Origin: Ruditapes philippinarum
Lineage: Eukaryota
Assembly (NCBI RefSeq): GCF_026571515.1
Contig: NW_026854988.1
Span: 372,001-436,000, forward strand
Length of the DNA stretch: 64,000 nt
Direction of reading: 5' to 3'
Shown here: one piece after another, positions 1 through 54,097 of the stretch
How positions within the stretch are numbered: the stretch's first letter is position 1
Layout: each line of letters opens with the position of its first letter
Notes under the pieces: generated by a model
The model's database searches: none
The model's input: the letters and a program-made list of their open reading frames with translations, nothing else
What the model was told of the DNA's origin: nothing
Position numbers and translations under genes: made by a program

Positions 1-60
1 ATTTATACAACGTCTGTATCAGCTGCAATGATCTAAAGTGTGTTATTCAATATATTAACA

Positions 61-6959: not shown

Positions 6960-7009
<50 letters not shown>

Positions 7010-15388: not shown

Positions 15389-16163
15389 AAAATTTTGTTC
15401 TATTTATTTAATCCACACTATTGCTGTTTATATACTTTTTCATTCAATTTTAAAAGTTTTGCAACTAGTTTTGTTTTCATTTCACTTTCAATATCTTTGT
15501 ACAGTAATTATTGCTTTGTTTAATATTCTCATAATAGCTTTAATTTACGTTTGTACATTATTTCATTATTATCTTTGTATCTTTAATAGGAAAAGAATTA
15601 CCTTCAAGAACAGTCTTTTACATTTTGAATATGTTTTAAGTATAGTTGATAATGTTAATAATTAAAACATTTTCTAACACTTTTCATCTATCTTATAGCA
15701 AATCGTTGTCATATCATTGTCATATGTACAAATATTTTATAAGATATGTAAGTAACGTTTTCTTTTGTAAATAGCTTTAGTAACTGGTATTGTAAACTTG
15801 AATGTATATTTGAATATACTTTTTATGATTGCATACATAAGATTATGAATTGCTTATAAATATATTCATATGCATATACACTTTTAAGGATGTCAGGTCC
15901 GGATGCGTACGTCTAGGAATCAGCCTTTAGGTATTTGTTTCTATTTTGTTCAGGAGATATAAAACATTTATAATTCAAATATTAATACATTTCATTGCCC
16001 ATTTGAGACGTTTATTTTTCAGTGTCATACTCCCTTTTTGCATTAAGTAGTAATGTCAATGACATAAGCATATTAAGAATTACTACATTTGCTAGTTGCA
16101 TATAAAATCGTTTGAATAAATAGTTATAAATGGAAGCTATGTACATTTATTACTTCCTGAATA

Positions 16164-16320
16164 AATCCAGTTACCCCTCTGGCGTGGGTTCGATCCCCGG
16201 GAGATGCTTTGGTAGTTTAGCGCGGAGGAAGGTAGTCTAATACTGGTGTAACTCTCCAGGAACGATGGTTAGGAAACTACCCACCTACTGTTGGGAAAAG
16301 GCGTAAAATGAAACAAACAA
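16164..16320 (+). mobile_element. 5'-truncated tRNA-derived SINE
   Basis: B box GGTTCGATCCC, (AAAC)n tail, TSD acttc(c/a)tgaataa at 16152 and 16321; matches 54098-54323; empty site in inverted paralog at ~31165-31200. Confidence 0.9.
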
Positions 16321-19151
16321 ACTTCATGAATAAAACTGTATCCATGTTGTATTGTTGTTATTCACTCTATTATAAGATATGAAAACACCAAGTTGGACAC
16401 TATTGTTAGAATAAAATGTCAGCACAATTTGAAATAAAAAATAAGCGTTATGTCACTTAAATAGCGTCTCTGCTGTAAACTGTCCAACTTTATATATGTT
16501 CATAGGCCTTGCATCTTCAAAAAATGATACCAATACAATAAACGTTCCAATAATACATACCAGTAAGTCAGCAGTAGCTATGTAGTGTCACAAATATGAT
16601 AATATAACGTTTCAAATTGTTCTCCTTTTCTTCGATCGAGTATCATCTTTTACACATCCTTATTATTTGTTTTCCTCGTTTTTTTGTATTGACGATGTTT
16701 TTTATTGTTGGTGGGGGTCTTCTTTTTTATGCATTTTAGTGATTTGTGTTTATAAAGTTAAACTTAACTTAAATACGTTAACGTGTTGACATTAAATGTT
16801 TAGATAATGCCATAACTTTTTATAATATTAGACTAAGGGATTTTTTATGATAAAATACACCTTAGTTTGATACAAAATAAATGTATATGTACGAATTGGA
16901 TTGTGTATCATTATCACTTTCCAGTTTAAAGCATACGTAAAGCATGTGTATATAGATATATTTAAATTGAAAGACGTTTCTTACAAAATTTGCATTGCTG
17001 TAATTACACTTCTGTTTAATCAAAACTGCATATAGGTATATACATGTAACTGAAAAGGTTACGATGTTTTAAATGTTTTTTGTTTTCAATTTTGCTCAAT
17101 CTACATTTAAGCCATTGCTATACAACTGATATAACATACTATATCGCATTATATGAAGCTGAAATGATAACACAATCATTTCAAAATATAACTTCATTTT
17201 GTTTTCACTATCATTTATTCCACGTATAACACCGCTATTAATTTGTTGGAACAGGTAAAAGAACAAAGAGTCACGTTGCACCTCATTTCCCTAATTATTC
17301 AAGATTTTTTTTTCTTAAGCAAACTGTTTTCATGTAGATTCCTATAAAATACTCATTACCATTCCATTCAGAATTACTTATTATTGAAAATAGCATAATA
17401 TTCCCTGCCAATTTGGAACAAAAAGTACCATTTACTGTAATTCAGATAAACGAGTTTCCCACAAACCGATTTAAAAACCACCTGTCGACAAAATCAGCTC
17501 ACATTAAGAGATTTGTTAGATAATATCCTAATTTTCAACTCAGCAGATTTGATGTCTTTCCTACGTAACAAATTTATTAAATAACAACTATTCCTGTATC
17601 GAGTAATTAATGAATCTTTGCTGTTATCTAAATGTTCTTAGTTTTTAAAACCATTGGTAACGCTGAATATAAGCTGACATGCAACAATCCCGTACTAATG
17701 TATATTTAATACTGAAACTGTAACTGTTAGGAATGTTTGAGTATCTCTAATACATCCGAAGTTGTATTATATACGGGATGTTGTATTTGTACAGCTAACC
17801 TGGAGGCATTCAGATTAAAAGAAGCATACATTTAAAAAATCATTCATAACAAAATTCATGTTAAATCGTATACAAATGACAGACAAATTTATATGAAAAT
17901 ATGGACTAAATTGTGTAATTCCATCAAAATTTAATCACTTAATGCCGTCGCCGTAGCCGCCACTACCGCTGCTGATGTTGATGCTTATTCATTTTGTAAG
18001 ACGTAAGAAAGACCATTCCGTCATTTTGACTCTTATACAAGTCAAAGAGCTAGTTGTTATACTTGTACGCCGTCTTGGGATAGCAAAATGTATTGATACT
18101 CAAAATAAAATATTACATTGTTCTTATAGAAAATCATTTAGCTGAATAGACAATACGTATTACAGATTCATTAAGTCGGAATGAGAAAATATTATAGACA
18201 TTCATTTAGTCGAATAGATAATATATTTTTGTTGTAAAGAATCCATTAGTTGAAAGCAGAATAAAATGTTATTAAACCTTATTACAATTTTGACAGATAT
18301 CTTATTTACCAGACTTTTAAAATAATCTTGAACATAAGCTATAAAGTTTTCATAAAATTTGATGTTCGCCGAGAGGAATAGATGAATAAATCGTTATCTT
18401 CATAACAAAAACACAACTAAGCACTTCATTTATGTCACGATTTTAAGTTTTTTGCGAATTTTTTGATAAAGCATTAATTCTTGAAAATTTTACAGATGAT
18501 TTTTATTGCTTGATAAAACATCATTGAAGATGTTATCTTCAGCTTTGAAATATTTTATATGTTTCAGATATCCTTATCGCCTAGAAACAGATGAGTTAAA
18601 GCGTGTTTTAATTAGAACTAAGTGATAACACACGAACTTTAAAAAATAGGTTATGCATTTCAGTTTTGTGACCTCTTAAGAACTGCACGTTTAAGTCCTT
18701 AGAAACAAATATCCGTTATCACTAATGTGTATTGGATATCTAAGGCTCATTTAGTAGTTTCCTAGAAACTTTGAAATATTACTTAACTTTCCACTTGTAA
18801 TTTATAGAAATGTAAATATAAGTTACAACAATTCGTGATATAATAATAACGAAAATATCATATTTCATGATCAGGAGTGGAGAGATGGTTTGCCATAATT
18901 GATTTATTCAAAGAGCATAGTGCCGACAAATTTAAGAATTACATCATATTTATCTTAGTTCAATGTACTATGTGCAAAAAAGAATTCAACAAGTCATTTT
19001 AGGCGGGTAGAGCTAGACCAGGTTATGGCAGTATGATTACATTGGTCACTTATAAAAACACAAAACAAAATACATTACTATTTATTTGTTTTTGTACAAA
19101 TATATTTTTGTGACTTTTATAGTGTGCAAAGGAGTACGCATTACATAAATA

Positions 19152-19803
19152 TTTTTATCACATAAACCGCGGCGCAGGAGTGTAATACAGCCATTTATCA
19201 CACACCTGTGCCGATTTTGCGACTCCGTAAAAATGGTATTGCACGGCCGTGCATATATTTTGACGTGACGTCATTAGCGTTATACAAACAAAGACGCGCT
19301 AAATGTTAACGTTATATTATAGGTGCGTCAATGAAAAATGACTCTTATTTCACTTTGAACGGTCTTTACTTTAGGTATGTGATGAATAGAATATTAAATT
19401 CGTGTCAGTTCAATAGTGAATTTCTAGCACTCGTTGAATAAAATAATATTATGCTCGCCAGTATTGAACTTACACTCACTCGATATCCTCTATTTAATAA
19501 AAACGATATTACGCTAGTGTAATTACACTTTGACGTGACGTCATTTGCGCTACATATAAACATAGCTTAAAGCGCGCTAATATTAGAGTTACACTATAGG
19601 CGCGTCATTGAAAAAAAATACTCATTTTAACAGTTTACTGTTCTTTTATATATATATGATAAATAGAATATTATATTAGTGTAGATTCAATACTAAATTT
19701 ATTGAACTCGTTGAATAAAACAATATTATGCTCGCAATATTGATTTTATTCAACTCGTTCAATAAATTTAGTATTTAACTACACTCATTCAATATCCTCT
19801 ATA
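19152..19803. mobile_element. Two related ~300-350 bp non-autonomous elements, one (19194-19493) nested in the other
   Basis: 19152-19193 joined to 19494-19803 reproduces the uninterrupted copy at 43517-43882; both begin TTTATCAC and end ATATCCTCTAT. Confidence 0.8.
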
Positions 19804-22800: not shown

Positions 22801-24673
22801 CAAAAAACATAAACCTGGAGGCATGCTGCTTTAAAAAGGACTTATATTTGTATAAATACCTGTAGGTTTCCCAAAACTGTATGAATTGTTGTTTATGTAA
22901 TATGACTGCTTCAACAATATTTGTTTATTCAATATGGCGATATTAAAATCGTTTCATACATATAGCTAAAACTTGTTTACATGAAAAACGAAACCGTAAT
23001 CAACTTTTGACAAAAATAAACATACTGTATATGTCAGCAGAATCATATTGTAGTTGAAAATACAACAATGTTTTTCATAGCAGCAAAAGAAATGGTGGAT
23101 AAAACTGTTCATTAAACCTCTCTGTCACTGGTTTGTCCTGCTTTGTATACTGAGAAGTCTACTTTTAATACTGGAGAGAAATTCAAGATCAGGGTGCTAA
23201 GAATAAGCATTGAATAGTTCAGACACTGATCGCATGGAAGAGTTTCTGAACTAATGCTATATATATAAACCATGTTAGACAGTTATTCTATAATTTTGAT
23301 GGATCATAATAAATAAGAAACAAAACTTTAGTATACAGACACCTATATTTTAACTATTCATGACATGTACCCAGAAGATTCTGGTTTACCCAACGGCTTA
23401 CAGCGGATCATACAGCATCAAATACACCCAACCCAAAAAGTTTCGGTGTACAAGAAAGCTTTTGATCTCACCAAAAAGCTTCCAAAGTTCCTAACAGCTT
23501 TTGCTACTGCAAGCAATGTCCTTTTGTACCTAACCGTTCCCAAGTTCCTTGTTAGTGTCTGTACAAAGACAGCGCCATGTGTATAATTCAACTTTGGATG
23601 AATCAAAGATTCCCAAACGTTCTAACAGTTCAAGGGTTAAATATCAACTTAACATACATACGGGATTGATGCATGCCAGCTTGTATTCAGCGTTATCAAT
23701 GGTTTTTAAACGAAGAACATCTAGATAACAGCAAATATTAAATAATAACACGTTACTGGAACAGATATTTTTAATAAACTTGCTACGTAAGAAAGATATT
23801 AAATCTTCTGGGCTGTAAACAAGGATATTTTTCAACAATTCTTGTAATGTGAGCTGATTTTGTCGACAGGTGGTTTCCAATCGGTTTGTTGGAAACTGGT
23901 TTATCTGAAATACAGAAAAATTGTTCCAAATTGGCACGGAATATTCTGCTAGTTATAATAAGAAGCAATTATGAATGGAATGGAAATGCGCATTTAATAG
24001 CTATCTACATGAAAGTAGTTTGCTTAAAATAAACATTTTAAATAATTAAGAAAATGAGGTGCAACGTTTACCTGTTTTAACAAATTAACAGCGGTGTTAT
24101 ACGTGGAATAAATTATTTTGCTTTTAATAGTGAAAACAAAAACAAAATGAAATTATACTTTGAAATGATTGTTATCATTTCAGCTTCATATAATGCGATA
24201 TAGTATTTTATATCAGGTGAATAAAAGTGGCTTAAATGTAGATTGCAATATTAAAAACATTTAAAACATATGAACCTTTCAGTTACATGTATATACCTAT
24301 ATGCAGGTTCGATTAAACATTTTTCATTACAGCAATGTAAATTATGTGATTAACGCTTTTAATTTTAAATATAATTGCTACACTTATTTATATACACGTA
24401 TGCTTCAAACTGGAAAGTGATGATGATACACAATCCAATTCGTACATATAATTTTATTTTGTATCAACCTAACCTGTATTATATTAAAAGAAAAATTCCC
24501 CTAGTTTAATATTATAAAAAGTTATGGCCTTATCTGAACATTTAATGCGTTAACGTATTTAAGTTAAGTTTGACTTTATAAACACAAATCAGTATAAAAC
24601 ATAAAAAGAAGACACCCACGAACAATAAAACACATCGTCAATAAAAACAGCCACAAAGCAAACAATAAGTATA

Positions 24674-24700
24674 CTGGGGTCCTACATATTTACCGGACAA
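24674..24700 (+). repeat. Left terminal inverted repeat of pogo element
   Basis: 27 bp, one substitution and one indel versus right TIR. Confidence 0.95.
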
Positions 24701-24924
24701 TCAGTTTACCGGACAAAATTTATTCGTATCAAATAAGCGCTTTATTTTATTATCGATTCTAAAATCATCCGGTCTGGATCACACAGATGCTTTCCGTTTC
24801 CAAGTGAATCACAACAAAACCGCTGTCAGGTAAATAATATTGATTCAATTCTATATTAACTTACATGCCACTTTGTTTACTATGTTATTTCATGACCTTG
24901 TCACGTGGGGGAATGATAATATTA

Positions 24925-24936
24925 TGCGCATGCGCA
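24925..24936. promoter_or_regulatory. NRF1/Ewg-type palindrome TGCGCATGCGCA (with E-box CACGTG at 24902-24907)
   Basis: Exact consensus match ~290 bp upstream of transposase ATG; function inferred. Confidence 0.4.
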
Positions 24937-25222
24937 AATATTGAGGCCCGTATTGTGTTATTTTACATAGGTCATTGCATTATCGTAGCAGACGATATAG
25001 TCATAATGAACATTTTGACAAAAATAGTTGTATTCAAACGAAGTATATTTTGATTTAGTCAGTACAATTTTTCTTCTTTTTTTTTTAAACAAAGAAATGC
25101 ATATTGAAAACTAGATCTATATCATGAAAAAGGGGTACGCCCGATTTTTCAAACCAAGGGAGGAAACTCTTCATGTAACAGTCACACAAATAAAAATGAG
25201 TTGTCTCCCTTTTTCAGGCTTA

Positions 25223-28200
25223 ATGATGACCAAAAGAAAGCAGTATGACGGTGAACAGATGCAAAGGGCTATATCAGCTGTTAAACAGAAAAAAATGAAG
25301 ATAAGATTAGCCGCTAAAGAATTTCAAGTTCCAAAGTCCACTCTGTCGGACAAGTTGAAGGGCAGGTACAAGGGTATGAAACCTGGCCCAAGGACGGAGC
25401 TGACTGATGAGGAGGAGAAAGCGCTTGTCCATTTTCTTCTCTATATGGCCAATCAAGGATTTCCCTTGACAAGATCAATGACAAGATGTTTTATCATTGA
25501 CATCATTAAACAGTCTGGTACGCATTCATTAAAAAAATATCGTCATAAAATGAATCCCCTCTTCAGTATCTTGTAATAAATTTATTTCTAGTTGAAATAA
25601 ACGTAGATAAAATTATCTTTAAAGTCCAAATTATGTAACTTAAAAATTTTATCAACATATTTTGAGTTATATGAGCCGTGTCATGACAAAACCAACATAA
25701 TGGGTTTGCGACCAGCATGGATCCATACCAGCCTGCGCATCCGCGCAGTCTGATCAGGATCCATGCTGTTCGATATCAGTTTCTTTACTTGTTATATGGT
25801 TTGTAAGCGAACAGCATGGATCCTGATCAGACTGCGCGGATGCGCAGGCTGGTCTGGATCCATGCTGGTCGAAAACGCATTACGTTGGTTTTATCATGAC
25901 GCGGCTCATATACTTTTTTTATACAAAAAATAACAAATCAGAAGTTGTCATATTGTTATATCTGTAAAACTTTATTTTAAGGTCGCACAACATCTTTCAA
26001 CATGGAAAAGGGTCCATCTGATGGCTGGTTCCAACGTTTTATGTCGAGACACCCGGATCTTTCTTCAAGGAAGCCGGAAAATTTGGACAAAGGCCGCATG
26101 TCCATGTCAAATTATAAAGTAGTTGGAGACTACTTCGAATTTCTGGACGGAATATTGGGGAAATATGGCATTAAAAACAAGCCTAGCCAGGTACTGATAT
26201 GCGCTTGTTTTGTTTGGTTGTTTGTTTGTTTCATTTTACGTCTTTTCCCAACAGTATTTCAGTCATACAGGCGGGTAGTTTCCTAACCATCGTTCCTGGA
26301 GAGTTACACCAGTACTAGATTTCCTTCCTCCGCGCTAAACTACCAAAGCATCTTCCGGGGATCAAACCCACGCCAGAGAGGTAACTGGATTAGAAGTCAT
26401 CGACTCTAACCCCTAGACCACGGAGGCGGTAACAACATTATGTCTTAAATATGAAAAATAATGAAAAACACAGCATCCTTACAGTTTAATACATAAGACA
26501 ACCAATAATAAGTTTTTTTTCCTAACAATTACTTTTGCATATTTGCAGATCTTCAATTGTGACGAAACCGGGTTCACCGGAAAAGAAATGCCGAGAGCAA
26601 AAGTATTCGGTCCAAAGGGAAAACATGTGTTTCGTCAGAAGATATCGTCCAGTGACCACATCACCGCACACCTGTGTGTGTCTGCAAATGGCAGATTTCT
26701 TCCTTCAATGATAATCTTCCAGGTAAATAACTAAGTTAGTAAGACGGAGATGTAAAAGATTCGTCATTCCAGTTTTCATAAAAGTATTTTAACAAAAGTA
26801 ATTAGATAATTAAGTTTATGAATATCGCCGTGTTGTCATGCTACATTTATGTATTTAATTTTTATACAAAATAGGGATCTTTGCCACACAGAAAGTACAG
26901 TGATGGTGTTCCAGACACATGGTTTTTCAGCCACAGTGATAGTGGTTATATGGACAGAGAGCTGTTCCAGAAATGGTTCAGCAATGTTTTCATACCCCAT
27001 TGCGGAAAAGAGAGGCCGGTTCTCCTCATCATGGACAACCACGATGCACACATAAGCATCCCGCTAATTGAGGAAGCCATTGCAAATGGTGTGGTTCTTG
27101 TGGGACTTCCAGGACATACCACTCATATACTGCAGCCACTTGATGTCAAGGTAACGAATTTACCACTTTAATTATATAAAGTAACAAATATTCCACATTA
27201 AGCCATTTGCGCGTCTAAGACCAAGATTGTCAGTACAAATATGAATAAGTTATAAATCATACATTTATAAAACTGCATCATTTCAAAAATCATTTTAACA
27301 AAAAACATGTACTATAATTGTAGATTATAGGACCATTAAAGGAAAGATATGCGGCTGTCGCTGCCAGTTTGGGACAAACCGGTTCGTCAATGGTAATTGG
27401 AAAAGCAAGGTTCCCATTGGTACTTAAGGTAAAAGAATAATATTAATAACAAATAAAAGATAAATAAGTGATACTACAATAAAAGTTGTACATTTTATTA
27501 AGTCGGACTTTTCCGATACATAATATCTTAACGTTACGATAGGTCCGGTCCGGTAGTAGAATATTGTTTAATAGTCGGTAAGCGAAGTCAAATGTATTGT
27601 TCAAATGCAATAATAATAGCCGTCGAGGTTTTGAATTGAATGCAAAATATTATGTGTCGATTGGACCGCATAAATAAATTGTAGATTATTTTTGATTTTT
27701 TAGCATGCATTAGACAAGGCTACACCTGCATCTATTTCGGATGCCTTTGCAGTGACCGGCATATGCCCTTTCAATCCTGATGCTGTTGACAAGTCACAGT
27801 TGATTGCAGCGTCATTTGAAAAAGGTTTGTGCTTAAGGTTCTAAGTTCTACATGTATATCACCAAAGATAGATATATTTCATTTATGAGCTGTTGTTTGC
27901 ACTTTTAAAGATTATTATAAGTCATAATATACTCCATTGGCATTAATTGAATTTGTGTCATTTATTGTAGACAAGCAACGTACTACGGACAGTGACAAGG
28001 ATGTTGTAACGACGTGTACCACGTGCGGCTCTTACGCGAGAAACCCCCTTGTTGTTCATGGTTTAATTCCCCAGGAGTTGTCTGATATATTAATGCCGCC
28101 ACCAGTTAAACCACAGCCACAGAAGAAAAGTAGGCGGCTAGTAACAGAAGCAAGACTGATAAGTGGTGCAGATATGCTTCAACAACTTAAGGTAAAGTTC

Positions 28201-29039
28201 AAGAATTGTAAATTCAATTTACATCAATATAATTACTTTCAAAAAACAATGAATTTGTTAACGCAAAACTATTCATTCTTATCAAGCGTTTCTTTTGCGC
28301 AACGTCTCGATGTACTCTTGTACATTGCAGGAAAAAAGAAAGAGGAAATTAAGAAACGCGAGGGTATCGAAAGAAGGAAAATAGAATTGAAAGAAAAGAG
28401 AGAACTCAAAACTAAAATGGAGCAGGAAAAGAAGGCTAAAAGAGAGCAAGAGAAAGAAGAACGAGTGAAGAGAAGAGAACAGCAAGAAGAAGAGAAGAGG
28501 CAGAGAAAGATTACCAGGGAAGAACAAAAACAAAAAAGGAATAAAGAAAGAGAAGAAAAACGAAAGCAAAAGCAAAAGTCGACGGTAAAAAAACCTTATG
28601 AGCAATAATGCTTTCTTATATCGTACGGATATTATGTTTTGCGCAAATGTTTCGAGTTTTTTTTATTTGTGATTAATTCCGAAAATTATTAGTATATAAT
28701 TGAAACGTAATTTGCAATTCAGAAAATGCCTTGCCACATTTTTTAGTCATATTAAGTTAGAACAAGTTTATTGAAAATGCTTTTGATGTGTTGTAGGTTA
28801 ATGTAGCAGAGCATCTTGCTGCTAGCTTCTATGTCTGTGATGTATGTGGAATAAGCGGTGAAGCTGATGATGAAGAGCGGGGAATCGCGTGGTATGGCTG
28901 CGACGAAGACTGTTGTCAACGCTGGTACCATGATGACTGTTTAAGTCTTGCTGAGTTGGAATGGGTGCTTGAAAGTCTGGGAGATAGTTCCAGCTGGTAT
29001 TGCAGACTTTGCAAGCCATGGCTCTACCAAGAAGAGTAA
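25223..29039 (+). CDS. Spliced pogo transposase (~630 aa): HTH_psq, CENP-B-type HTH, DDE_1 (DD35D), CxxC, K/E coiled coil, C-terminal PHD finger
   Basis: Exons with GT-AG boundaries: 25223-25517, 25982-26190, 26549-26722, 26875-27150, 27324-27428, 27704-27824, 27971-28191, 28331(or 28339)-28584, 28797-29039. Motifs AAKEFQVPKSTLSD, GFPLT, GWFQRFMSRHPDL, IFNCDETGF, LLIMDNHDAH, HTTHILQPLDV, AFAVTGICPFNP. One phase conflict at exon 7/8. Confidence 0.92.
25668..25912. mobile_element. Palindromic (fold-back) MITE in first coding intron of the transposase
   Basis: ~105 bp arms TATATGAGCCG...GGATCCATGCTGTTCG / CGAACAGCATGGATCC...CGGCTCATATA around a ~35 nt spacer. Confidence 0.9.
26205..26429 (-). 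mobile_element. Full-length tRNA-derived SINE in second coding intron of the transposase
   Basis: Near-identical to 54098-54323; A/B boxes on - strand, (AAAC)n tail; no clear TSD. Confidence 0.9.
28797..29039 (+). CDS. Terminal transposase exon encoding a PHD (C4HC3) finger
   Basis: Translates VNVAEHLAASFYVCDVCGISGEADDEERGIAWYGCDEDCCQRWYHDDCLSLAELEWVLESLGDSSSWYCRLCKPWLYQEE*; acceptor tgtAG at 28795-6. Confidence 0.88.
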   Translation, partial: VNVAEHLAASFYVCDVCGISGEADDEERGIAWYGCDEDCCQRWYHDDCLSLAELEWVLESLGDSSSWYCRLCKPWLYQEE

Positions 29040-29560
29040 ATCTGTGCTTACTGTGACAATTGTGTAACTGTTATTTTATGGTTTTTTTGTGTTTTGATAA
29101 AAAAGCAAACGCAAAGTGAAAAAAAAATTACTGAATATCAAATACGATAAATGATTTATAAAGAATTAATACGTTTATTGTGTTATTATTTAATAGCCCA
29201 TACACCCCATGTACGGGCCTCACCATGGTTCGTGTCTATTTTTAGTGACAACTTGGGGTTTTCCGATATTTTAAACTTGCCTTTTATTAGTAGAAGTTCC
29301 CTTGGTGAGTATTTTTGTGATTTATTTTGATTCACGACTATAAAATGTTATTAAACTAAATGTCCGGTAAATTGAGTTGTATGTACGTTTTTTTGGCTTT
29401 TATAATGCCCCACTTTAAAGACGCTTTTAATGGTCAGAATCATAAATCTTAAGCATGAAAATATATCGAGAACATAAATTGAGAACCAAAAATTAGTTGG
29501 GTAAAATTTCATGATTTTTTATTGTTTTGAATAAAAGTTACAGCTAAAAAACCTCATATT

Positions 29561-29586
29561 TTGTCCGGTAATACGTAGGACCCCAG
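29561..29586 (-). repeat. Right terminal inverted repeat of pogo element
   Basis: TTGTCCGGTAATACGTAGGACCCCAG followed by TA. Confidence 0.95.
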
Positions 29587-30639
29587 TATGTAAAAATGAT
29601 AATCGGTCGAACTAACATATGATTTTTTCTAAACTTTCGATACAGTCATATAGAAATATTAGCAATGATTGCGTTACATGGACATAATGTTTTCTGGTAG
29701 CTAAGAAATATACTGAGAGTACCTGATAAGTTCGGTGTATTTTGGGGTGTTTTTCGATATTTTCATGATGTGCATGAGTAGACTTATAGGATTGCGAAGG
29801 ATTCTTGCGGTCTTGTAAATTTTGACAAAATTTAAAACTCAGTAAGGTCTTGACTGTGCAATAATAAACTCTTAATTCTTATGTAAAATAAAATGTTCAT
29901 ATGAACATGCCATGTGATCTAAACCCAATTAAAGTATTTTAAATAGAAAAATTAATGAACCATCAAGTACATTTCATTAAAAAAATATCCTTTTCATTTT
30001 ATTTCATTACGGAAAAAAAATATCCTTTACATTTTATTTTAGAATGGCCAATACAATGAAGTTATAGGTTTTCAGTTTGTTATTTTAAAATTACCAAATA
30101 AAATTCTTCTTATATTCAGTTCTTCCCTGTAAGGTTAAATTTTACAGGAAGTCAAATTTACTTTAGCCGGCTTTGGCCGAAACAGCAGTCTTTTGCAACG
30201 TTTTGTCTCATGAACTGTTTGTGGATAGAATGTGTACACATGTTTGTTTTTATTTCAGCGGAATATGGTATTTATTATGAAGAATAACTATTCGTTTTTG
30301 GGATGTTCAAATCAATCTGCTGTATTAATACAGTGTAATTTAAAAGTCAATCAATTGCAATTGGATTTAAATACACACCGGTGAATTTTGTTCTGAGAAC
30401 TAGTTTGTGAGGAGTGAATTAGAAATTAAACGAAGTAATCATACCTTGGAACAGATGGGATATAAAGCAGAGTCAGGAAAATTGTGATTTTGTGAGTGTC
30501 ATTTGTTAATGTACAATTTCAATTCTATATGAAAATGTAAATTCACTCTGCTTTGTATTTGTAATGAACAATATATATTGTTAACAACTGTTTGTTTGTT
30601 TGTTTGTTGATGACCCCTTGGTTTCATTTTTTTTCTTGT

Positions 30640-32140
30640 CGTACAAAGGTGAACTATTTGAAACGTTAAATTACCAAATTTGTCTGCATAGCTACTGCTG
30701 ACTGACTGGTATGTTTTATGGGAATGTTATTTTAATTGAAGATACCAAGCCTATGAACATAATATAATTGTTTTGACATTTTACAGATGAGACACTACTA
30801 AAGTGAAATTATGCTTATGTTGTATTGTCAAATTGTGTTGAATTGACTATACATTTCAAAACATGGCCTGATATAATGATGATTGACCAGCAATTGATTA
30901 AATAAAATGTTAATCTGCCCAAGATATAACAAAATAGCCAATATTTTCATAAATTGAACGTTCGGGTATATTCCGATGGATATTGATATATTAATCTATT
31001 TGAAACTCGCCATCGTAAACTTTCTTCGAGACAAATGATTTCGTAATTAATTGTTGACTACTTTACTGATTGAAGCCATATTTATTAAGCTATACGTTTT
31101 ATTCTGACAAAACTTGGTGTTTTCATATCTCATAACAGAGTAAATAACAACAATTTGACATAAACATAGTTTTATTAATGAAGCAGCTTCCATTTATAAC
31201 TATTTAATAAAACAATTTAATATGCAAATAGCAAGTGTAGTTTTTCTAAATATGCAAAGATCATTGGCATTACTACTAAATGCAAAGAGGTGGTATGACA
31301 CTGAAAAAATAATTCTAAAACTGAATAATGAAATGTGTTAATGTTTGAAAACTAAATGCATTTTATCTTCTAAGCAAATTAAGGAAAGTACAAGAAGATG
31401 CCAATCCGGATATGAGACACTTAAACTAAGTATATATACATGACTTTCTATATATTGACTTTCTTTCAAATATATTAGCATTTCATAACCTTATGTATGC
31501 AATCATAAAAAGTATTTCCACATATATATACATATAATACATATTAAAAATACCTGTTACTTCAGTTATTTACAAAAATGTTATTTACATTCCTATACAA
31601 AAGCTAAAGCGGCATCCTTTTCCCAATAAAATGTATTGAAATCAATGATCCTGGATATTTAGAATTTCTCCAATTCTAAAAACGACATTTTAATGATGGG
31701 CTTAGATATAACAAATACATATTTTGTTGTCCTTTTCAATATTATAAGACATTTGTTCCAATTATATTATATTATACAATAACAAATATATTTTGTTGTT
31801 CTTTTCCATGTTCTCAGACGTTTGTTCAAATTCTTTGCTAAATTGTTCTCCTTACTTTGTAGCAATATCATAATTATAAAATTATATTAAAATGCCTTAA
31901 AAGAACAAGATTGTATTCTGACAACAATATGAAAAATTATAAAGACTCATGCCGCTTAAATAATTCATAGAAATCGGTATATCCAATAAGTTTCTGCAAT
32001 ATTTCACTGTCTGTTACACTGAGGTTGTCTGTCGATCTATAATGATCGGATGCTGTGCTACAGATATATTTGTTTCACATTTTCGTGGGATTGGCTAATA
32101 AATCATGTTGAAATGAAAGTTTATTTGAGCTGTAGTTTAG
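30640..32140 (-). pseudogene. GPCR paralog relic lacking the entire coding exon
   Basis: Exon-1 homolog 31951-32140 with donor GTAAGT changed to ATGAGT; intron homology stops at 31603 (=13388) and resumes as 3' flank (=~15735). Confidence 0.8.
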
Positions 32141-34151
32141 ATAACAATTCTAAGTGATCTTGTGATCTAAGTGATCTGTTGGTTACTCAATGTTCATAAA
32201 TTTTAAAATCTTAAAAGCATACATCACTGAATATGCCAATTGAATGATCATATAAACTTACATCAAAGTCAAATTCAAACTTTTAGTGTAAGGTTGTTAG
32301 AAATCCCTCTTGAGATTAAATATTTCATCGACATTACATTCAAAATTTTAGAGACTTGCCATATCTAAGGAATACATGTACTAGTTTCATCGAAAACATT
32401 TAACATGAAAAATATAAATTGTGATAATCAATGTAAACTTAACTCGTTTAAAGGAATAAACATTAAGTCTTTTAACAATTTTACAATAAAATATGTTGTC
32501 TTTAATATTATTTCTTCGAAACATAATTACAGCAATATGCATTACATTTTGTTTGTATAATCGATTTTTGTACGTGCATGTACATTTTAGTATTTTTTTT
32601 TATGTTTATATACTGCACCCTGAAAACTACTTGTTTTCAATATTACCAGTCACTGTTATAAACTGTGGGAGCTAAGTCAATTACAACACAAACGAGATAG
32701 AGTAAATATTAACATCAAACTTTGCTTGGTACAGAAGGTGAAATATGAAACATTCCTATTTACAAAGCGTATGTAAATATATCTGGTTAAACCTGCCAGT
32801 TGTTTAAGCAATGTCGGGCGTGCACTTAAGATCGTGCAGTGCGGCAATATAATAACAGATAAACAGTTTCAAAAATGTTCATTCAAGATTTCATTTACGT
32901 TATCAATACCATTTTACCGTAAAACTATTTCTCTTAAGTTTTAACCTACATCGCCAAAGATGTGAATGATTGTGTATGATATAAACATGTTGCGTTTATT
33001 TATCAAAAGATCGCATTAAAATATGTATATTGTGTTGCTGCTGACGTCATGAGTTGATATCATCTATGTGTTCTTTAAAGGTACATTAAGTGTTTCATTC
33101 AATAAAAAGTAACCTCTTTGTTGTGGTCTGTAATGAATGAATTACTCTAGTGTGAAAAAAATCCCACCTGTTCTCCAGGATAGCTTGTAACCAAGAGAAA
33201 CTAAATCGACTTCAGAAATCATTTATTAAATCTACATTAGCAATGTTTTATGAAACCTCCACAGCAAGATCCATAATCAACTTTCCTTATATCAGTGTAA
33301 ATCAATTTCACATAGAACAAACGACTATTTGATTTATTTATATCAATACAAAGTCCATTCGTTTTAATAATACATTTGAAAGTTCATACACCTGGCCAGA
33401 AGTGATATTTACTTTTTATTTTATAATATACAGGCTGAAAACAATGTATTGCTGTCAAAGGATTTGAGACTTGTCATAAGGCCATGCCACTTGATGTTCT
33501 CAGTTTGATTCCTTCTAAAATAACACATAGCTATGTTCAATGATGTAATGAGATGTGCACATATTGCATATCTTCATAATAATATCCTAGATATAGCAAC
33601 ATTATAGGCGAAAATAATATCTATGCAAGGTAATTGTGTTTGATATGAACAAGTTTTTAATAAAAAATATTTTTTGCTGTAATATTTAATCCATCCCTCT
33701 TTGCTTTTCATTTTACTGATTAATATGTATTTAATTTTGTGATGAGATTCAAAATCACTAGTTACAATATAACTGTTTGCCCTAACACTGATACAAACCT
33801 GGTTCTTTGTTCAAGATATAATTTGTATGATTTTTGTTTGAGTCCTACGTTTTAACATTTTATAAATAAAAAAAACAGCCAATGTGTTGTTATTTATGTT
33901 AATGATATTTTCTATCGCAGCGCCCGATATCCACGCATAGGGTTCCTCACAGATATTTAAAAAACAATTTCTTGATCAGAGAGCAAAGGTTCATTTATAA
34001 AGTAAAAAACTACTTATCAACCTGAACTTGGGGATGATTTCTTTCTTTCAAAATTAATTTAACCATTTTTACAGATGTTAAGAAATATTTTTGGATTTAT
34101 TTAAATAAAATATTAACTGTAAAACATTTGATTCGGATCACAACGGAAATA

Positions 34152-34473: not shown

Positions 34474-36869
34474 TATTGAAGAAGACTCATATACTTACTA
34501 TGTGCACTTTCATATTTCATAGTTCTCACACATTTGATTCATGTTACTTCTACTATGATCGGAGATTTTTCGTTATTATGTGTATAATGAGAACAATTCA
34601 TTCGGACATCATTTTGAGTCATCTATTATAATTGTTTAATTTTTTTGTAAATATATTTAATGAAGTGAATGTGTTTCTCGTAGATGAAAGATAACATCTT
34701 TGTTGAAATAATTAATAAATTTGGTGTGCATAATAGCCCAGTGAACACAATTTAGATTTTTGCAACTGATAAGGCACTTGCATTAATAAACATTAAAACT
34801 TGATTGTTTTATCAATTTTCAGTATTTGATTAATGGTTCTCTTAAAATGCATAATTATCATGACTGATTAATAAAATAATAAATAGGCTAGCAATTAAAC
34901 TGGATGCTGTTGGTGCTTACAAATGATGATAAAATATCTTTAAATTTTATTTCGAATGACTTCGACTTTATTATTCAACATATTGTTCCAATACAATAAT
35001 TCATGAAATGAATCTATCAAGAGCGTATGGTTTATATAAATTTATAATGTTCACAACAAATTTATAACAATGTCAGTCTTTACATATGCCGACAATTCAA
35101 AACGATTGCAATCACAGTGAAATTGATGATGTTTAATGATATTGTTTTTCGGTATGGTTTCAATTTATTTTTGCCAGACATTTTGATAGAATATAAGTAT
35201 GTCATTCTGATGATACTATATATCTAAAAAAGAGGTTTTCGTGTAGGAATCCGGGTGCCACTATATCAATGGTCGCAGACCCTAAGTCATGTAAATTGGT
35301 TTTAAAAGGATGTACATTAAAGTCTAGCTAAAACAAGTTGCATAACATTTTAGAATGGACACTTTTTTATGATTAGTTCGAATTGAAAGTATAATGTTGA
35401 GGTCTTTGTTGCAAGAACATACCTTGTATGCATATAATATTCAAATAAAAAGAGAAATATTTGTAACCGTTCCAAAATAAATTATGTTTATCGACGTGCA
35501 ATTTTATAAAAATGTTTCAAGTATTAATGGTGTATCATGAAATAATACTTAAAACTGGAAATCGTGACCTAAAGATAGTTATCCTTTGTTATAAAGATAA
35601 CGATTTACTCGTTTAATCCCCTCTACGAATATTTAAATTCATGTTTAACAATAAAATACTTCGTTAACACCCATGGGTATCATTTCTAGTAGTCAAGAAG
35701 ATTATTTAATAGTCTGATAAGTACAATTATATATATATTTACTAGTGGACAAAATGATCTTTACAGCAATAATATATCATACATTTGACTTAATCAATGA
35801 CATATTCTTTAAGCGACTCAATGAATATAATATGCAACTGCACATTTTATATTCCATACAAAAAGACATTTTATAAGAACGTATAGTTTATTTTTGATTA
35901 TCTTTTACATCAATGCTTTCTAATGTATAAGACGTATGAATATGTTTATTCCCTATTCGCCAGATTAGTTTTTCTATCACAGCAATGCTCTTGTTCTATA
36001 TATTAATCAAATCTAAGCATCCGATCAATTGTAACGTAGACCAACAATATCTTCTTTTTTGACTGAATATCAATTTAATCCTTCATTCGATTGATAGTCG
36101 TCAATATTTCTTGGCGGCGTTAAGGAAAAAAGTAGATCTTTGACTTTTGAAAGTTATTGGAAATGATCAAAGATTCTGTTTAAGTGATTCAAAAATGTTC
36201 AGTCTGCTAGGAATAAGGAACGGCAATAACTACAAGACCAATAAAAATGAAACCAACAAAATGATAACAACCCTCATCACCCCCTCCCCCCCCCCCCAAT
36301 TCAAAAAGAAAGAAAAAGAAAACAAACAAAAGATTATTAACAACAACAACACAAAAAAACAACAATAAAATCCTAACCAACAAACACAAAGCACAAAACA
36401 AAAGCAATCAAACAGTCAAGCATTCACTTGTTACGCCCCTTTGAATATACAATAACCGATTACCTCAAGATATAAAAGCAGTGTTTCGTGATGGAATCAT
36501 ATGTAGATGCTTAGAACTAGAAGTCTGAAATTTCATATTTTGTTTAACAGTCAGGTATTAAAATATGAGATTTGTTTTCATTGTATATCGCAGATAAAAA
36601 ATTTGATTTTGCGCTTCACAATTTGTATAAATGTCCGCCGGGTTTCCCAAAACAAATATCATAAATTTTTTTTAAATTTCTCGGAGAGTACAGAAGTGTA
36701 ATGTACCGAAACAGCTATGGCAATAGTTTGTAACTTTTATATTTTATAGTGATATTAATCTCCTTTTAAACATATGACTGAATATTTATTAAAGATATAT
36801 TAAGAACATTAAACTATAAAAAAAACAATAAGAAGAAAAAAACAAAAAAAACATTTTAAAATTTTATCC

Positions 36870-38720: not shown

Positions 38721-41700
38721 CATTGATATATAAATAATGTTATCTTGTACGAAGTGTTTGATAGATAATGTAGAAAAAACGAGTCTTTTCTAGGGTGTTC
38801 CATTTGATCAGATCAAGTCCTTTAGCGGAGAATTCAATTCTTATTTGATAGATCATTTCTGATTAACATAAACATTGTTATGGTATCTTAGCTATGTTAA
38901 GGAATGCTAAACTAAATTTGAAACAAAATGCTGATATCTTCACAGTAATGTTATAAAAACTGAACCATGGTTATTCTGTCTGCATAAGTGTCATTCTCCG
39001 ACGAATGATTTCTTTTCCTCGTTAGTTTATTGTACTCTATGGTTGTTCAAGTATACATCTTTATTTGTAGCAATCATTTGTTGTTTGTATCTTCGCTTTC
39101 AATAATGTTACTTGTCCTTGTGCATCACCGCATGTTTATATTATCATATATGTCACACTGTTCAATAACTATAGCTTTATTATCACAGTTGTATTAGCTA
39201 ATGAAGGCTTCTTTTCTCTGCTTCTTTTATTCGCTTGAATATTATTTTATTAATATTGTTGGTGACACATGAACACCGTTGTGAGGTGCTTAATATGTTC
39301 TAGATTTCATGTACTTCTATTAAAATTGACAAATATTGTATGAGTTGTATGAGTACAATAACCATTAACAACCTATGTTACACTAAGTCTTAGACTTTTA
39401 TACTGCGTCTATTTTCTCTGGTTTCGTTTTTATTTATGTCTTTGTTCAGTCTTATTTCAAGAAATAAATCTTTACAAACCTGTTCGGTGGTAATGATTAA
39501 GTATTTCGGAATTCAGAATTCATTTCTTGAGTCTTCATAATATTGCTTTACGTTTTCTTGTATAGAAGTTCAAATTCGACAAAATACCAAACATTGAAAA
39601 TTATTGTATCACGCGAACCTTCCTCGAATCATTTTCATAAAGAATTGAGGTTAGCACTGAGGTAAAATCACTAAAAGTTATAATCTTCCAACTAATTAAT
39701 TGCAGGGATTGAATTTAACATTTTAAGCTTTGAACGTTTGTTTACAACCAAAACATATGGAAATAAAGTTTGACGTAGAAAATGTGTTCCAGCACGATAG
39801 TGATAGTTCTTTCTTTTGTTACTAGCTAGTAAAACAAAAACATGTAGTAAAACATATACACAGATTTTTTAGATGTTGTAATACCATGATTTAAAATTAA
39901 TTGAACTCATGCAATTACAATATTGAACTAAATTTTACTGCAGATTTTATCTATTCAGTTTTAAAGAAAATGTTTTCAAATAATTATATGTACACACAAG
40001 AATTTACAATACAATCTGAATAATGTAATGGAAAGGATAAGAAAAAAACAAATATGTGGTATTTGTCTTCAATGAGTACAAAATCAGGTTTTTAATAAGA
40101 ATTAAGCTTTAATTGTGTAAGGAAAACAGGAATAAAACAGGGATTAAAATCTCAATTAAAAACAACTTACGATAAGAAAGGATAGACAAGGTCTTGAGAA
40201 AGAAAAATCGAAGAAATGCGTTTGGGACTTAATTATTTTAATATTTTGCTTTCATTGATGAAGCATTGGACGCTTGTAAAAGTGATCGTATTTTCGTTAT
40301 GTGGGAACAAACGATTGACAATTATTTACACTTACATCAGCGTCAAATTCAAACTTATATTTCGTTTTTGCCCTACGCAAAATGCGCATGCGTGAAATGC
40401 AACATCCGTTACTATGGAAAAATCGTACTGTACAATGGTCTAAAAATAGTTTAATGTCATTATGAGAGAGTTGTTTGTTTTAATATATGAAATTAATATA
40501 AAGAAAGTTATTTATGAATTTTACTGTGGAAATTTAATAAAATATAGCTTATGTAAATTTGGAAAATGATTTCTAAAGAAGATTTAATCTCTATTGCTGA
40601 GAAGTTATCCTGCAGAACAGGTGAGATACTACAGGACTATAGTAATTCATTCATTGGAGTACACATCAGAGATTTGAGATTTTTTTATTTCTTGAATGAT
40701 ACAAAAAAGTACCTTTAAAGAGGACGCAGGTGATATAATATCATGACGTCAGCAGCAACACAATATAAATCATTTATACCATTACAAAATCCATTCAGAT
40801 TGTTTATAACTTAAGGAGTGACATTTATTGCTTTGCTTTTCATTCGTGTAATACACGTTATTTGTTTTTGTGATGAGATTCAAAATCACTGGTTACAATA
40901 TTATTGTTTGTCGTAACATTTATACGAGCCTGGTTCCTTGTTCAACATATTACGTGTTTCAGTTTGTCCAACTGAGACCTACATCTTTAACATTTTATTA
41001 CAAACGATTAATAAAATAACCAATGTATTATTTGTTATGTAAATGATAAATTCTATCACAGCCCCAGATATCCACGCATAGAGATTGTCACAGATATTTA
41101 GAAAAACCTTTTCTTGAGCAAAGAGCAAAACATAATTTAAAAAAACTACTCTTGAACTTGAACTTGGTTTTATATCTTTCTTTCGTAATTAAATTACCTA
41201 TTTTTTTACAGATATTTAGAAATATTTTTGAGTATAAAATATCATTTGTTTCGTATTATTTCACAACTTAAATATTCATGAGAACTCATATACTAAGGAT
41301 GTGCGCTTACACCGTTTTATAGTTCTCATACATTTGAATAATATAACAATGATCAGATGTTTCGTTATTGTGTATAATATTAAAATAATAACAATTTTTA
41401 AATCATAGCTAATCATCTATTTTTTATCATTCTTGTAAATATATTTCTTTTCAATTCGATTTAAACATTATAACTTTAAACGTTCTTTTGGTTCACCGTA
41501 CTGTAAACAGGTACGATCATTTTTTGCATACAATGTAGCAATCAAAGTATCAAATAGTTAAACATTTTGCAGTATTAAATTAATGTGTTTCTTTTAGATG
41601 TGTGATAACACATTGTTGAAATATTACACTCATTGCTATATATAACAGTGCAGTGAACACAATCAAGATCATTTCAACTGATAAGGCCGTTGTATTAATG

Positions 41701-43516
41701 CACATCATAACTTGATTGTTTTATAACTTTTCAGTATTCGTTTAATGTCTGTTCCCTCAGAATTCATATCATAATTGATTAATAAAGCAATAAATAGACG
41801 TTCAATTAAACTAGAATCTGTTGATGCTTAGAAATGATGATAATTTATCTTAAAAATGTTGTTTCTGACTGACTATGACTTAATTATTAAACATATGGTT
41901 CCAATACAATAGTTCATCTATTGAAACGTGCACACAATTATAACGTATCATGTTCAGGATTGATTATAATGTTGGCCTATAGTTATGCTTACAATTCCAA
42001 ACGATTGCAATGATAGTGAAATTGAGATGCTTGTTGATTTTGTTATCGGTATGAATAAAATCTATTTATGCTAGACTTTTTCCAAAATATAAGTATGTCA
42101 ACCTGTTGATATCACATATCTCTACAAAGAGGTATCTGTGTACGACTCTGGGTGCCGTTTTATTGACCGTCGAAGGCCCGGTCGTTGGAAAGTGCGTACA
42201 TTTTCATCTGTTTTTATCAACATGGTCGTAGCAAAACGTCTTAAATATACGTTGAAACACTACAGACGTTTCAATACAGTCTTTATAATGATCAAATGCT
42301 AAAAATGGCGACTGATGAAGCAGCAAGAGAAATAATCCGCCCGGGATATTCTTATTGAGTTACGATGGTGCCAGACAGAGACGGCGGCGATTATGATGCT
42401 TATGGCGATAAAGAGGAAAACAACGGCGGTTACTTTAAAATAATTACAAAAATAACGGTAAAGAAATAATTATTTAAAAACAAACAAACAACAACAAAAG
42501 AATTAATGAATATTTATTCAAGAAACAATAGGAAAAAACACAAACAAAACCAACAAACAAAAAACAAAACAACAACAGCAACAAAAAATGAAAAAGAAAC
42601 AAAAACAAACATTACAAAAACAAACAAACGACAAACAAACAAACAAACAAACAGATAAACATTGTAGTCGGAAAAATTACAATGGATTTTTTTGCAGCAT
42701 CAAAAGAGTTTTTTTTGAGGATGCGAAAAGCGTAAGTCTTCCAATTAATTGTGGATGCATCAGAGAAACCTAGCAGCGTCCTTTGAATTTATACAGTTTC
42801 CGGTGTTACAAGCCAAATAATTATGTATTGCATCATGCCAAAGAATGTTCAACTTTATCAATAGTTTCTAAATTAAGACATAGTAAAGTGTAATATACAG
42901 ACAAAGATAGAATAATAACGACATGTTTGAAACAGGTGTTAATTATTACCCTAGCTGCATTAGAAAATCCTATAAAAAATTAACATAAATACGTAATCTT
43001 TACAATGCAATAAAGGAAATTAGAAAACTCTTATTTTGCCGACAGACAGTTTTCAATCGGTTTATATTGCCTTTAGAGATAAAAATTCTTCTCGTTAAAA
43101 TTACACATATATATTAGGAAAGTATCATGCGCAAATTGGAACATTAGATTTTGTTATTATCATAAACAGCAATTAACAGTGGAATTATAATTGATTATAT
43201 ATTTTATATGTATCTAATTTAAAGCTCTTAACTGCTAGATCTAATGTATGTATGAGAACATGAAAGTTTTTGTAGCCGTCTTTTATTTGTGATTTTATGT
43301 GTTCTCCGTTATTCTTCTTTTTCTGTTAACTTCATGAATATTTTTAAATGGAAAACAATCACTTTGATATATAAATGATGTAACATTGTACGAAGTGTTT
43401 GATAGATGATATAGAAGAAAACGGGTCTTTTCTAGAGTGTTCCATTTTATCTGATCAAGTCTTTTAATGGAGAGTTCAATTCTTATTTTCATAGATAATT
43501 CTGATTAACATAAAAC

Positions 43517-43882
43517 TTTTTATCACATAAACTGCGGCGCAGGAGTGTAATAAAGCCATTTAATAGAAACGATATTACACTAGTGTAATAACACTTTGAC
43601 GTGACGTCATTTGCGCTTTATAGAAACATAGCGTTAAAGCGCGCTAACGTTAGCGTTACACTCTGGGCGCGTCATTGAAAAAAATACTCATTTTAACAGT
43701 TCACAGTTCTTATATTAGACATGTGATAAATAGAATATTATATTCGTGTAAATTCAATACTAAATTTATTGAACTCGTTGAATGAAACAATATTATGCTC
43801 GCCAGAGGCTCGCATAATATGATTTTATTCAACTCGTACAATAAATTTAGTATTAAACTACACTCATTCAATATCATCTATA
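43517..43882. mobile_element. ~365 bp non-autonomous element with long right-hand hairpin
   Basis: Homologous to 19152-19803; absent from paralogous site at ~38870; no obvious TSD. Confidence 0.8.
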
Positions 43883-45819: not shown

Positions 45820-46025
45820 NNNNNNNNNNNNNNNNNNNNNNNNNNNNNNNNNNNNNNNNNNNNNNNNNNNNNNNNNNNNNNNNNNNNNNNNNNNNNNNNN
45901 NNNNNNNNNNNNNNNNNNNNNNNNNNNNNNNNNNNNNNNNNNNNNNNNNNNNNNNNNNNNNNNNNNNNNNNNNNNNNNNNNNNNNNNNNNNNNNNNNNNN
46001 NNNNNNNNNNNNNNNNNNNNNNNNN
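45820..46025. other. Assembly gap (206 N)
   Basis: Run of N. Confidence 0.99.
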
Positions 46026-53532: not shown

Positions 53533-53709
53533 ACTCCATGCTTACTGGCGCCCATACCTAGTAATAATGTATGATGTTGGTATATAATATTTTCAACTCG
53601 TCAGTTTTTCGTTAAATTCTTACTACATGCTTACTGGCGCCCATACCTAGTAATAATGTATGATGTTGGTATAAAATATTTTCAACTCGTCAGTTTTCCG
53701 TTAAATTCT
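53533..53709. repeat. 89 bp tandem duplication (2 copies)
   Basis: catgcttactggcgcccatacctagtaataatg... repeated. Confidence 0.92.
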
Positions 53710-54097
53710 AAACACATTCATTCTGAAATACTCTTGGAATACATGTAAAAAAAGGTTTAATTTATCCCTTCATATTTACGCCAATCTCTTTTTGTTTAGT
53801 TTCTATACGTATTTGTCTTTTTGTTAGACATGGAAACATAACAGTAAACTTCATTCGTATTAAGAGGAGCTAGTATTATCTTAAGTATTATCTACCGTCA
53901 CACAATGTTCTAAATGTAAATACTTTAAGGCACGCGTCTTTTACCTGTAACAACCTTTGAATATTCTAGAAAAAGATATATTGTCTGTTCATGATTAATA
54001 ATGTAAAGCACGATATCTCAAAAGCTTCGTAACACAGGATGACGCAGTTTTCAATCTTCAACTCTCAAAGTTTTAGAATAATCGTCCCTCCCGATAG

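Follow-up and report, generated by a model that had tools for sequence, protein, structure and literature searches.

A probable cut-and-paste pogo transposon with a nine-exon transposase gene in the clam Ruditapes philippinarum

Transposases of the Tc1/mariner/pogo type are usually treated as the products of a single open reading frame (ORF), an assumption on which many mining pipelines rely, and their multi-exon relatives are routinely interpreted as domesticated host genes. The subject here is a pogo-type element of the bivalve Ruditapes philippinarum that has both terminal inverted repeats (TIRs) and a transposase gene of nine coding exons. It occupies positions 24674-29586 (4913 bp) of a 64,000-nucleotide stretch of contig NW_026854988.1, which is called the window below. 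The length is within the 1.2-5.2 kb range of a survey of pogo elements (PMC7386202). In the survey the transposase is encoded by one or two ORFs, and neither 'intron' nor 'PHD' occurs in its text. [quoted passage not shown]

The clam element shares with the pogo superfamily a TA target-site duplication (TSD), TIRs of no more than 40 bp ('type 1'), a DDE_1 domain with the D,D,D triad and HTH_Tnp_Tc5. It departs from the superfamily in its nine coding exons and in a C-terminal region with a CxxC motif, a lysine/glutamate-rich (K/E) coil and a PHD finger. The one-or-two-ORF description does not hold for it, and that feature is descriptive rather than superfamily-defining. Passer agrees with the clam element in DD35D spacing and animal host, but the BrkDBD that accompanies HTH_Tnp_Tc5 in Passer is not among the domain matches. 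Fot/Fot-like agrees in HTH_psq plus Tc5 and in DD35D, but its TIRs are mostly 40-60 bp, its TSD is often TAA or TAAA and its hosts are fungi and protists, in contrast to the 27-nt TIR, the TA and the animal host found here.

The closest precedent for the intron-bearing structure is TLEWI, a Tc1-like group with DD36E, 3-6 exons and 322-378 aa that is found only in Pteriomorphia (bioRxiv 10.1101/656579). Nearly all of its members are without TIRs and TSDs, and domestication has been proposed by the authors (bioRxiv 10.1101/656579). Both are bivalve IS630-Tc1-mariner (ITm) transposase genes of low copy number, with GT-AG introns at conserved positions and spliced transcripts. The clam element is nevertheless not a TLEWI: it has a pogo-type DD35D/DDE_1 core, HTH_psq and Tc5 rather than PAIRED, nine exons and about 630 aa. 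Unlike TLEWI, it has kept its TIRs and TA flanks, has multiplied and has derivatives that resemble MITEs (miniature inverted-repeat transposable elements), and its host is a heterodont. The Drosophila P element is likewise bounded by TIRs; it has three introns and an 8-bp target duplication and requires host splicing of its transposase mRNA. It belongs to another superfamily, and regulation by splicing has been demonstrated there, whereas it is only possible for the clam element. The domesticated genes POGK, POGZ, TIGD1-7, CENP-B and JRK (PMC7386202) resemble the clam element in combining DDE_1, a helix-turn-helix (HTH) domain and accessory domains, and some are multi-exon. They are, however, single-copy, syntenic and TIR-less, whereas the clam element is multi-copy, bounded by TIRs and TSDs and decaying neutrally. 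A C-terminal cross-brace zinc finger is associated with a DDE recombinase also in the C-terminal cysteine-rich domain of piggyBac (PMC5861402) and the PHD of RAG2 (PMC4411706), both from unrelated superfamilies. No paper on intron-rich pogo elements or on PHD-bearing pogo transposases was found; a prior entry in Repbase or Dfam may exist.

Ends, insertion site and coding exons

The locus is read as a pogo-superfamily (ITm) cut-and-paste transposon whose transposase gene was split by spliceosomal introns while its lineage stayed mobile, with a probability of roughly 85%. The two ends (Table 1) conform to the consensus CTGGGGTCCTAC[A/G]TATT(T)ACCGGACAA and differ by one mismatch and one one-base indel: the 5' end reads CTGGGGTCCTACATATTTACCGGACAA and the 3' end, on the opposite strand, CTGGGGTCCTACGTATTACCGGACAA. 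The motif TTTACCGGACAA is repeated just internal to the TIR at each end of the element. The window contains an old segmental duplication in inverted orientation (15763-17794 versus 23559-31577), about 80% identical, that is the source of an empty site. The inverted paralogue at 16656-17794 runs uninterrupted over the insertion point without the element; it matches the left flank to the final base before the element and then about 30 bases of the right flank, with a single TA-equivalent site. The empty paralogue thus reads ...AATAAGGATGTGTAAAAGATGATA, and the occupied locus ...AATAAGTA[element]TATGTAAAAATGATA. About 1 kb at 29620-30644 is likewise without counterpart in the paralogue and represents a separate indel. 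The element was inserted after the local duplication. Since the duplication is old (about 20% diverged), this order of events says little about how recent the insertion is.

Domain searches against Pfam were run exon by exon, or with natural full-length relatives; the exons were never joined for a search. Exon 1 matches HTH_psq (E value 7e-8) and the first third of HTH_Tnp_Tc5. The latter domain is divided between exon 1 (profile positions 1-26) and exon 2 (47-66), and each half is below the gathering cut-off, which is passed by the full-length relatives. BrkDBD is absent from the exon 1 matches up to an E value of 0.1, HTH_psq being there instead, and CENP-B_N, the domain of Tigger and pogoR, was not detected in the same search. 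Exon 4 matches DDE_1 with an E value of 1.3e-13. The motifs NCDETG, MDNHD and QPLD, which carry the three catalytic aspartates, fall in conserved alignment columns of 46 relatives, and 35 residues, counted on exon 4, separate the second and the third. Exon 9 encodes a PHD finger (PHD_NSD, 4e-5). Among PHD fingers of solved structure, those of Pygopus, CFP1, DIDO and BPTF are its closest matches by sequence (E values of 7e-4 and weaker). These four read methylated histone H3 lysine 4. The PHD finger of the clam element might serve in chromatin reading or tethering.

The near-perfect TIRs, the TA duplication, the empty paralogous site and the intact D-D35-D triad had all been pointed out in an earlier note on the window, made from the DNA letters alone, and all were borne out. 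The same note had called the transposon complete. This goes too far: the frame of exon 8 is broken (see below), and the window copy is only near-intact.

Splicing and the frame of exon 8

All eight introns between coding exons are GT-AG. The element is present in 20 public runs from one organism, and four runs were mapped onto positions 24300-29900. A contig of 1638 nt (X5 record 10) is made up of the pieces 26043-26187, 26546-26720, 26873-27148, 27702-27822, 27969-28196, 28340-28583 and 28796-29135. It joins exons 2/3, 3/4, 6/7, 7/8 and 8/9 at the predicted sites, within 1-3 ambiguous letters. The joint of exons 1 and 2 is found in X6 record 12, and that of exons 5 and 6 in both X6 record 14 and X5 record 10. 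The joint of exons 4 and 5 follows by arithmetic only: an unlisted stretch of 105 nt in X5 record 10, between exons 4 and 6, equals exon 5 in length. The eight coding introns proposed in the earlier note are in this way matched by contigs of the RNA type at every predicted site. In the genome, exon 4 has three matches of at least 96% identity, each in a short, exon-sized open frame, and no intron-less copy of the window element's family was found there. The exon-joined contigs therefore represent a spliced transcript and not a retrocopy. Coverage in run X1 is even over exons and introns, which fits pre-mRNA or DNA.

An additional intron had been proposed in the 5' untranslated region (24830-25217, forward strand). 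It is not seen spliced among the joints listed, and it is crossed unspliced by two contigs, X6 record 11 (24690-25205) and X1 record 1 (24696-25670); the proposal is unsupported. Intron 7 was considered as a retained coding segment. It is open in the frame of exon 7 in the window copy but has stops in the copies C15717 and C4490, and the idea was rejected.

Seven of the eight junctions had been reported to join cleanly in phase. The odd one, between exons 7 and 8, is accounted for by a one-base shortfall in exon 8 of the window copy, which is 254 nt long versus 255 nt (5 + 5 + 245 letters) in X5 record 10. The exon starts CAG|GAAAAAGAAGAAGAGG in four other copies, one of them 12-15% diverged, versus CAG|GAAAAAAGAAAGAGG in the window, with one base fewer; the extra base is also present in an unspliced contig (X1 record 8). 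Read from the canonical acceptor, exon 8 of the window copy stays open for 17 codons and then meets a stop, which lies upstream of both the K/E coil and the PHD finger. Comparison of the copies indicates that the shortfall is a derived mutation or an assembly error and that the family norm is in frame. The AG at 28337-38, if used as acceptor, would preserve the frame. The window copy is probably not autonomous as assembled. X5 record 10, which comes from a different individual, matches it at about 99.6% identity over exons 2-9, and the exon pieces of this contig are without indels.

Copies, derivatives and intron-bearing relatives

The genome-wide search for copies that the earlier note had recommended was made in the assembly of 1.41 Gb and 15,874 contigs, in which the window is C3475:372001-436000. 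Five further two-ended copies were recovered (Table 1), together with partial copies in C9784, C988 and C13036. All six two-ended copies, the window copy included, have kept the TIRs and are bordered by TA at either end. Their flanks are unrelated, and homology to the window ends exactly at the element termini. Because the transposed copies retain the introns, the element must have moved as a DNA unit, introns included. Compared with the window copy, C15684 has diverged by 0.4-2.0% in substitutions, C14688 by 1.1-2.7% and C15717 by 3.1-5.5%. Within the family the exons show no stronger conservation than the introns, as is expected for the neutral decay of copies after insertion.

At least 363 candidate loci in the genome match the first 192 bp of the element. 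Six such derivatives were read. They are 768-1034 bp long and combine 299 bp from the 5' end of the element with 270-445 bp from its 3' end, with the same TIRs and TA flanks. The abundance of these non-autonomous derivatives accounts for the raised read depth at the 5' end of the element.

A phmmer search with exon 4 returned 7891 relatives, the best of them 60-70% identical and belonging to bivalves (Ruditapes, Pecten, Mercenaria) and amphioxus. The whole architecture, including the CxxC motif, the K/E coil and the PHD finger, is also found in Pecten proteins labelled 'tigger transposable element-derived protein 6-like' and in ENA proteins of unstated origin. Among 46 long relatives, HTH_psq was detected in 24, Tc5 in 19 and the Pfam PHD domain in 9, with PHD_NSD in one more; CENP-B_N and BrkDBD were found in none of the 46. 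With a natural full-length relative as the query, at least 3487 candidate loci were found in the genome, many of them uninterrupted ORFs of 500-760 aa. In these intron-less elements identity to exon 4 is 45-49%, and a PHD finger is present in three as well. Some 25-30 loci with a higher identity to exon 4 (58-77%) lie instead in exon-sized open frames.

Eleven of the loci (L063-L073), representing at least five families, contain exons 1 to 7 in order, with exons 5 and 6 contiguous. Introns 1, 2, 3, 4 and 6 are present in them at identical codon positions, with GT or GC ... AG borders. The position of intron 7 is matched as well in the four loci checked (L066, L067, L068 and L070), and in the four sister loci checked the K/E coil and the PHD finger form a single exon. 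C7776, the sole sister family whose ends were read, is 4957 bp long and has three copies at 94-95% identity. Its TIR is a perfect 24 bp, CTGGTTTCCTAGCAGTTTCCGG, with TA flanks, and is related to but distinct from that of the window element (CTGGTTTCCTAG... versus CTGGGGTCCTAC...). Counts of synonymous (pS) and nonsynonymous (pN) differences were summed over separate exons. Between families, exons 3 and 4 give a pS of 0.8-0.9, which is saturated, and a pN of 0.17-0.25; this combination indicates that the catalytic core has long been under purifying selection. In a tree of exon 4 the intron-bearing loci form one group (support 93/83), with the intron-less loci outside. The six intron positions persist across saturated families, with TIRs and TA of their own where the ends were read, and the intron-bearing structure is thus compatible with long-term mobility.

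Introns 5 and 8, which lie in the exon contexts AAG|C and ACG|G, have no match in the 1.4-Gb genome beyond the copies of the window family. Being limited to this mobile family, they arose after its split from the sister families. The most parsimonious history is one in which the clade's common ancestor already had six introns and the window family later gained two more. The chances are put at about even that an old bivalve pogo lineage, possibly still mobile, gained its introns stepwise (none in the PHD-bearing outgroups, six in the sister families, eight in the window family) while bounded by TIRs. The earlier note had described a heavily spliced transposase in a mobile unit. Mobility with introns is upheld; the element is one family of a deep clade, not a singular case, and TLEWI is a precedent for intron-bearing ITm elements in bivalves.

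Three loci that are 61-68% identical to exon 4 (C11388:8895-9572, C11623:45215-45895 and C14714:123482-123937) have the regions of exons 4, 5 and 6 within a single open frame, 191-254 aa long. Possibly they represent a family without introns 4 and 5, which would be a further step of intron gain or loss.

The RefSeq protein XP_060575632.1 of Ruditapes philippinarum maps exon by exon, at 91-100% identity, onto the sister copy L070 (C15098:218274-221549), which RefSeq models as a multi-exon 'uncharacterized protein' gene. At position 1776 of L070 the GT donor after exon 4 is replaced by AT, and the protein continues into the intron and ends there (...DVKICNVHVIF). L070 is a decayed transposon copy annotated as a gene. 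Annotation of mollusc transposable elements (TEs) probably misfiles such elements as host genes, as RefSeq does here. The statement of the earlier note that the family would be invisible to ORF-based TE annotation is plausible in this light.

Table 1. Features of the clam element and its copies (positions are those of the window unless a contig is named)
Feature	Position	Strand	Remarks
5' TIR	24674-24700	+	27 nt; followed by a second TTTACCGGACAA subterminal repeat
3' TIR	29561-29586	-	26 nt
Left TA target-site duplication	24672-24673		directly outside 5' TIR
Right TA target-site duplication	29587-29588		directly outside 3' TIR
5' subterminal region	24674-24972	+	element positions 1-299; common to derivatives at 80-85% identity
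3' subterminal region	29142-29586	+	element positions 4469-4913; common to derivatives at 72-76% identity
Empty site in inverted paralogous segment	16645-16665	-	within-window alignment
Coding exon 1	25223-25517	+	start codon, HTH_psq, first part of HTH_Tnp_Tc5; ends in phase 1
Coding exon 2	25982-26190	+	end of HTH_Tnp_Tc5
Coding exon 3	26549-26722	+	first catalytic Asp (NCDETG)
Coding exon 4	26875-27150	+	DDE_1 core; second and third Asp (MDNHD ... QPLD)
Coding exon 5	27324-27428	+	105 nt
Coding exon 6	27704-27824	+	ends in phase 1
Coding exon 7	27971-28191	+	CxxC motif and conserved basic stretch RRLVTEARLISG; ends in phase 0
Coding exon 8	28331-28584	+	K/E-rich coil; 254 nt in window copy
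Coding exon 9	28797-29039	+	PHD finger, stop codon
Intron 5	27429-27703	+	only in window family; exons 5 and 6 fused in at least 5 sister families
Intron 8	28585-28796	+	only in window family; K/E coil and PHD in one exon in sister families
Palindromic MITE nested in intron 1	25668-25912		245 bp; two 105-nt arms, each a hairpin
SINE-like repeat in intron 2	26209-26429		about 220 bp; also at 54102-54322 and 16164-16322
Two-ended copy C15684	C15684:447133-452024		full length
Two-ended copy C15717	C15717:98711-103812		without nested MITE; additional ~440 bp
Two-ended copy C14688	C14688:9615-14070		without element positions 2177-2605, exon 4 included
Two-ended copy C75	C75:110386-114083		older subfamily, 12-15% substitutions
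Two-ended copy C4490	C4490:105342-110890		older subfamily, 12-15% substitutions

Mobility, competing explanations and nested repeats

If the locus is an intron-bearing cut-and-paste transposon, its cycle would begin with transcription of the element and excision of the eight GT-AG introns by the host spliceosome. The mRNA would encode a protein of about 630 aa with HTH_psq and the Tc5 HTH, the DD35D core, the CxxC motif, the K/E coil and the PHD finger. The two N-terminal domains would serve to bind the element ends, and the protein would recognize the CTGG...ACCGGACAA terminal and subterminal repeats. The transposase would then cut out the entire 4.9-kb unit, introns included, and reinsert it at a TA, and the 0.8-1.0-kb derivatives with common ends would be mobilised too. 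Transposition would on this scheme depend on host splicing. The transposase may still be catalytically competent.

Several observations weigh against such a transposon being active at present, or weaken the evidence for it. The coding sequence is interrupted in every assembled copy: besides the window copy with its exon 8, C15684, C15717 and C14688 carry frameshifts, stops or the deletion of exon 4. The runs in which the spliced joints were seen are presumed, not certain, to be RNA. In X21, the sole certain RNA run (4% of reads sampled), exon depth is only 0.1-0.7; expression in this run is low. The exon 4 tree comprises 91 columns and has many unresolved forks. Part of the defects of C15684 are perhaps assembly noise, as many small indels alongside few substitutions suggest.

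Some of these observations give substance to the possibility that the family is extinct, i.e. that it was formerly mobile, has no functional transposase source left, and that its transcripts are read-through or decay products of dead copies. Besides the defective copies and the very low expression, this would account for the small copy number, with four full-length or nearly full-length close copies and a few fragments, and for the derivatives, which are only 72-85% identical to the element ends and hence old. Extinction is the most serious of the alternatives but is held to be doubtful. The 1638-nt spliced contig from another individual is in frame over exons 2-9, and in two copies substitutions relative to the window copy amount to no more than 0.4-2.7%. 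In addition, X1 record 8 and X6 record 16 diverge from the window sequence right at the 3' terminus, which hints at copies elsewhere, or at a polymorphic flank, in other individuals. The earlier note had suggested a recently active family on the ground that the element jumped after the local duplication. That order of events stands and the divergence between copies is low, but the duplication is too old to date the insertion. The divergence of the two closest copies, together with the in-frame RNA contigs from other individuals, is better evidence for fairly recent activity.

A second explanation reverses the order of events: a domesticated, intron-rich pogo gene, having gained its introns as a host gene, would have been captured between pre-existing MITE ends and mobilised again. 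Heavily spliced transposase genes are indeed usually domesticated (bioRxiv 10.1101/656579), and the terminal 299 bp and 445 bp of the element are common to an abundant, older-looking MITE-like family. However, at least five further families have the same six intron positions, and no family other than this mobile one has introns 5 and 8. C7776, moreover, has several copies with TA flanks and differing but related TIRs, which means that ends and transposase diverged together as mobile units. Capture of a host gene is accordingly considered unlikely.

Less probable still is that the introns are nested TE insertions spliced by chance and that the element is an ordinary single-ORF pogo. Nested repeats do exist in introns 1 and 2. 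The palindromic MITE in intron 1 has thousands of candidates in the genome and reaches a depth of 10^4-10^5, on both strands, in the RNA-type runs. It is absent from C15717, from C9784 and from the older subfamily; it therefore entered the family after the lineages of C15717 and C9784 had split off and was carried along in later transpositions. The repeat in intron 2, which resembles a short interspersed nuclear element (SINE), shares 96% identity with another copy elsewhere in the window and is abundant in the RNA-type runs; it is absent from the copies of the older subfamily, and no tRNA was found in it by ARAGORN. Copies without the MITE or the SINE-like repeat nevertheless keep introns 1 and 2, introns 5 and 8 match only copies of the family, and six intron positions are common to families with saturated synonymous sites. 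An ordinary host gene lying by chance between short inverted repeats, for which the gene-like exon-intron structure and the annotation of a sister copy as protein-coding in RefSeq could be cited, is refuted by the six copies, which share their 26-27-nt ends and TA flanks but lie in unrelated DNA, by the empty paralogous site and by the hundreds of short derivatives with the same ends.

With the intron-bearing transposon as the preferred reading, a transposase gene can be heavily spliced without having been domesticated by the host. If the stepwise gain of introns is true, intron-richness becomes an unreliable mark of domestication, and the family provides a natural multi-copy system in which the origin and timing of introns, and the gating of transposition by splicing, can be studied. 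Introns 5 and 8 would then be clear, lineage-specific examples of recent gain, datable from the divergence of copies. A splicing-dependent transposase with a PHD finger of the histone-reader type would also allow host control and the choice of targets in the pogo superfamily to be put to the test.

Other repeats are scattered over the window. A tandem duplication at 49-9229 has two units that are 81-95% identical, its period being about 4.83 kb, and comprises the repeat families D1, D2, D4, D6-D8, D10-D13, D15, D17 and D18; its spacing shifts midway from about 4830 to about 4365, which indicates an indel of about 460 bp in one unit. A local direct duplication, about 7 kb apart and 80-82% identical, pairs 33728-33964 with 40859-41105 and 34721-34835 with 41633-41747. 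Positions 45820-46025 are 206 N. Two tandem 89-bp units at 53533-53710 are 96% identical, and short repeated elements with the palindrome TGACGTGACGTCA are found at 19222-19738 and 43558-43805.

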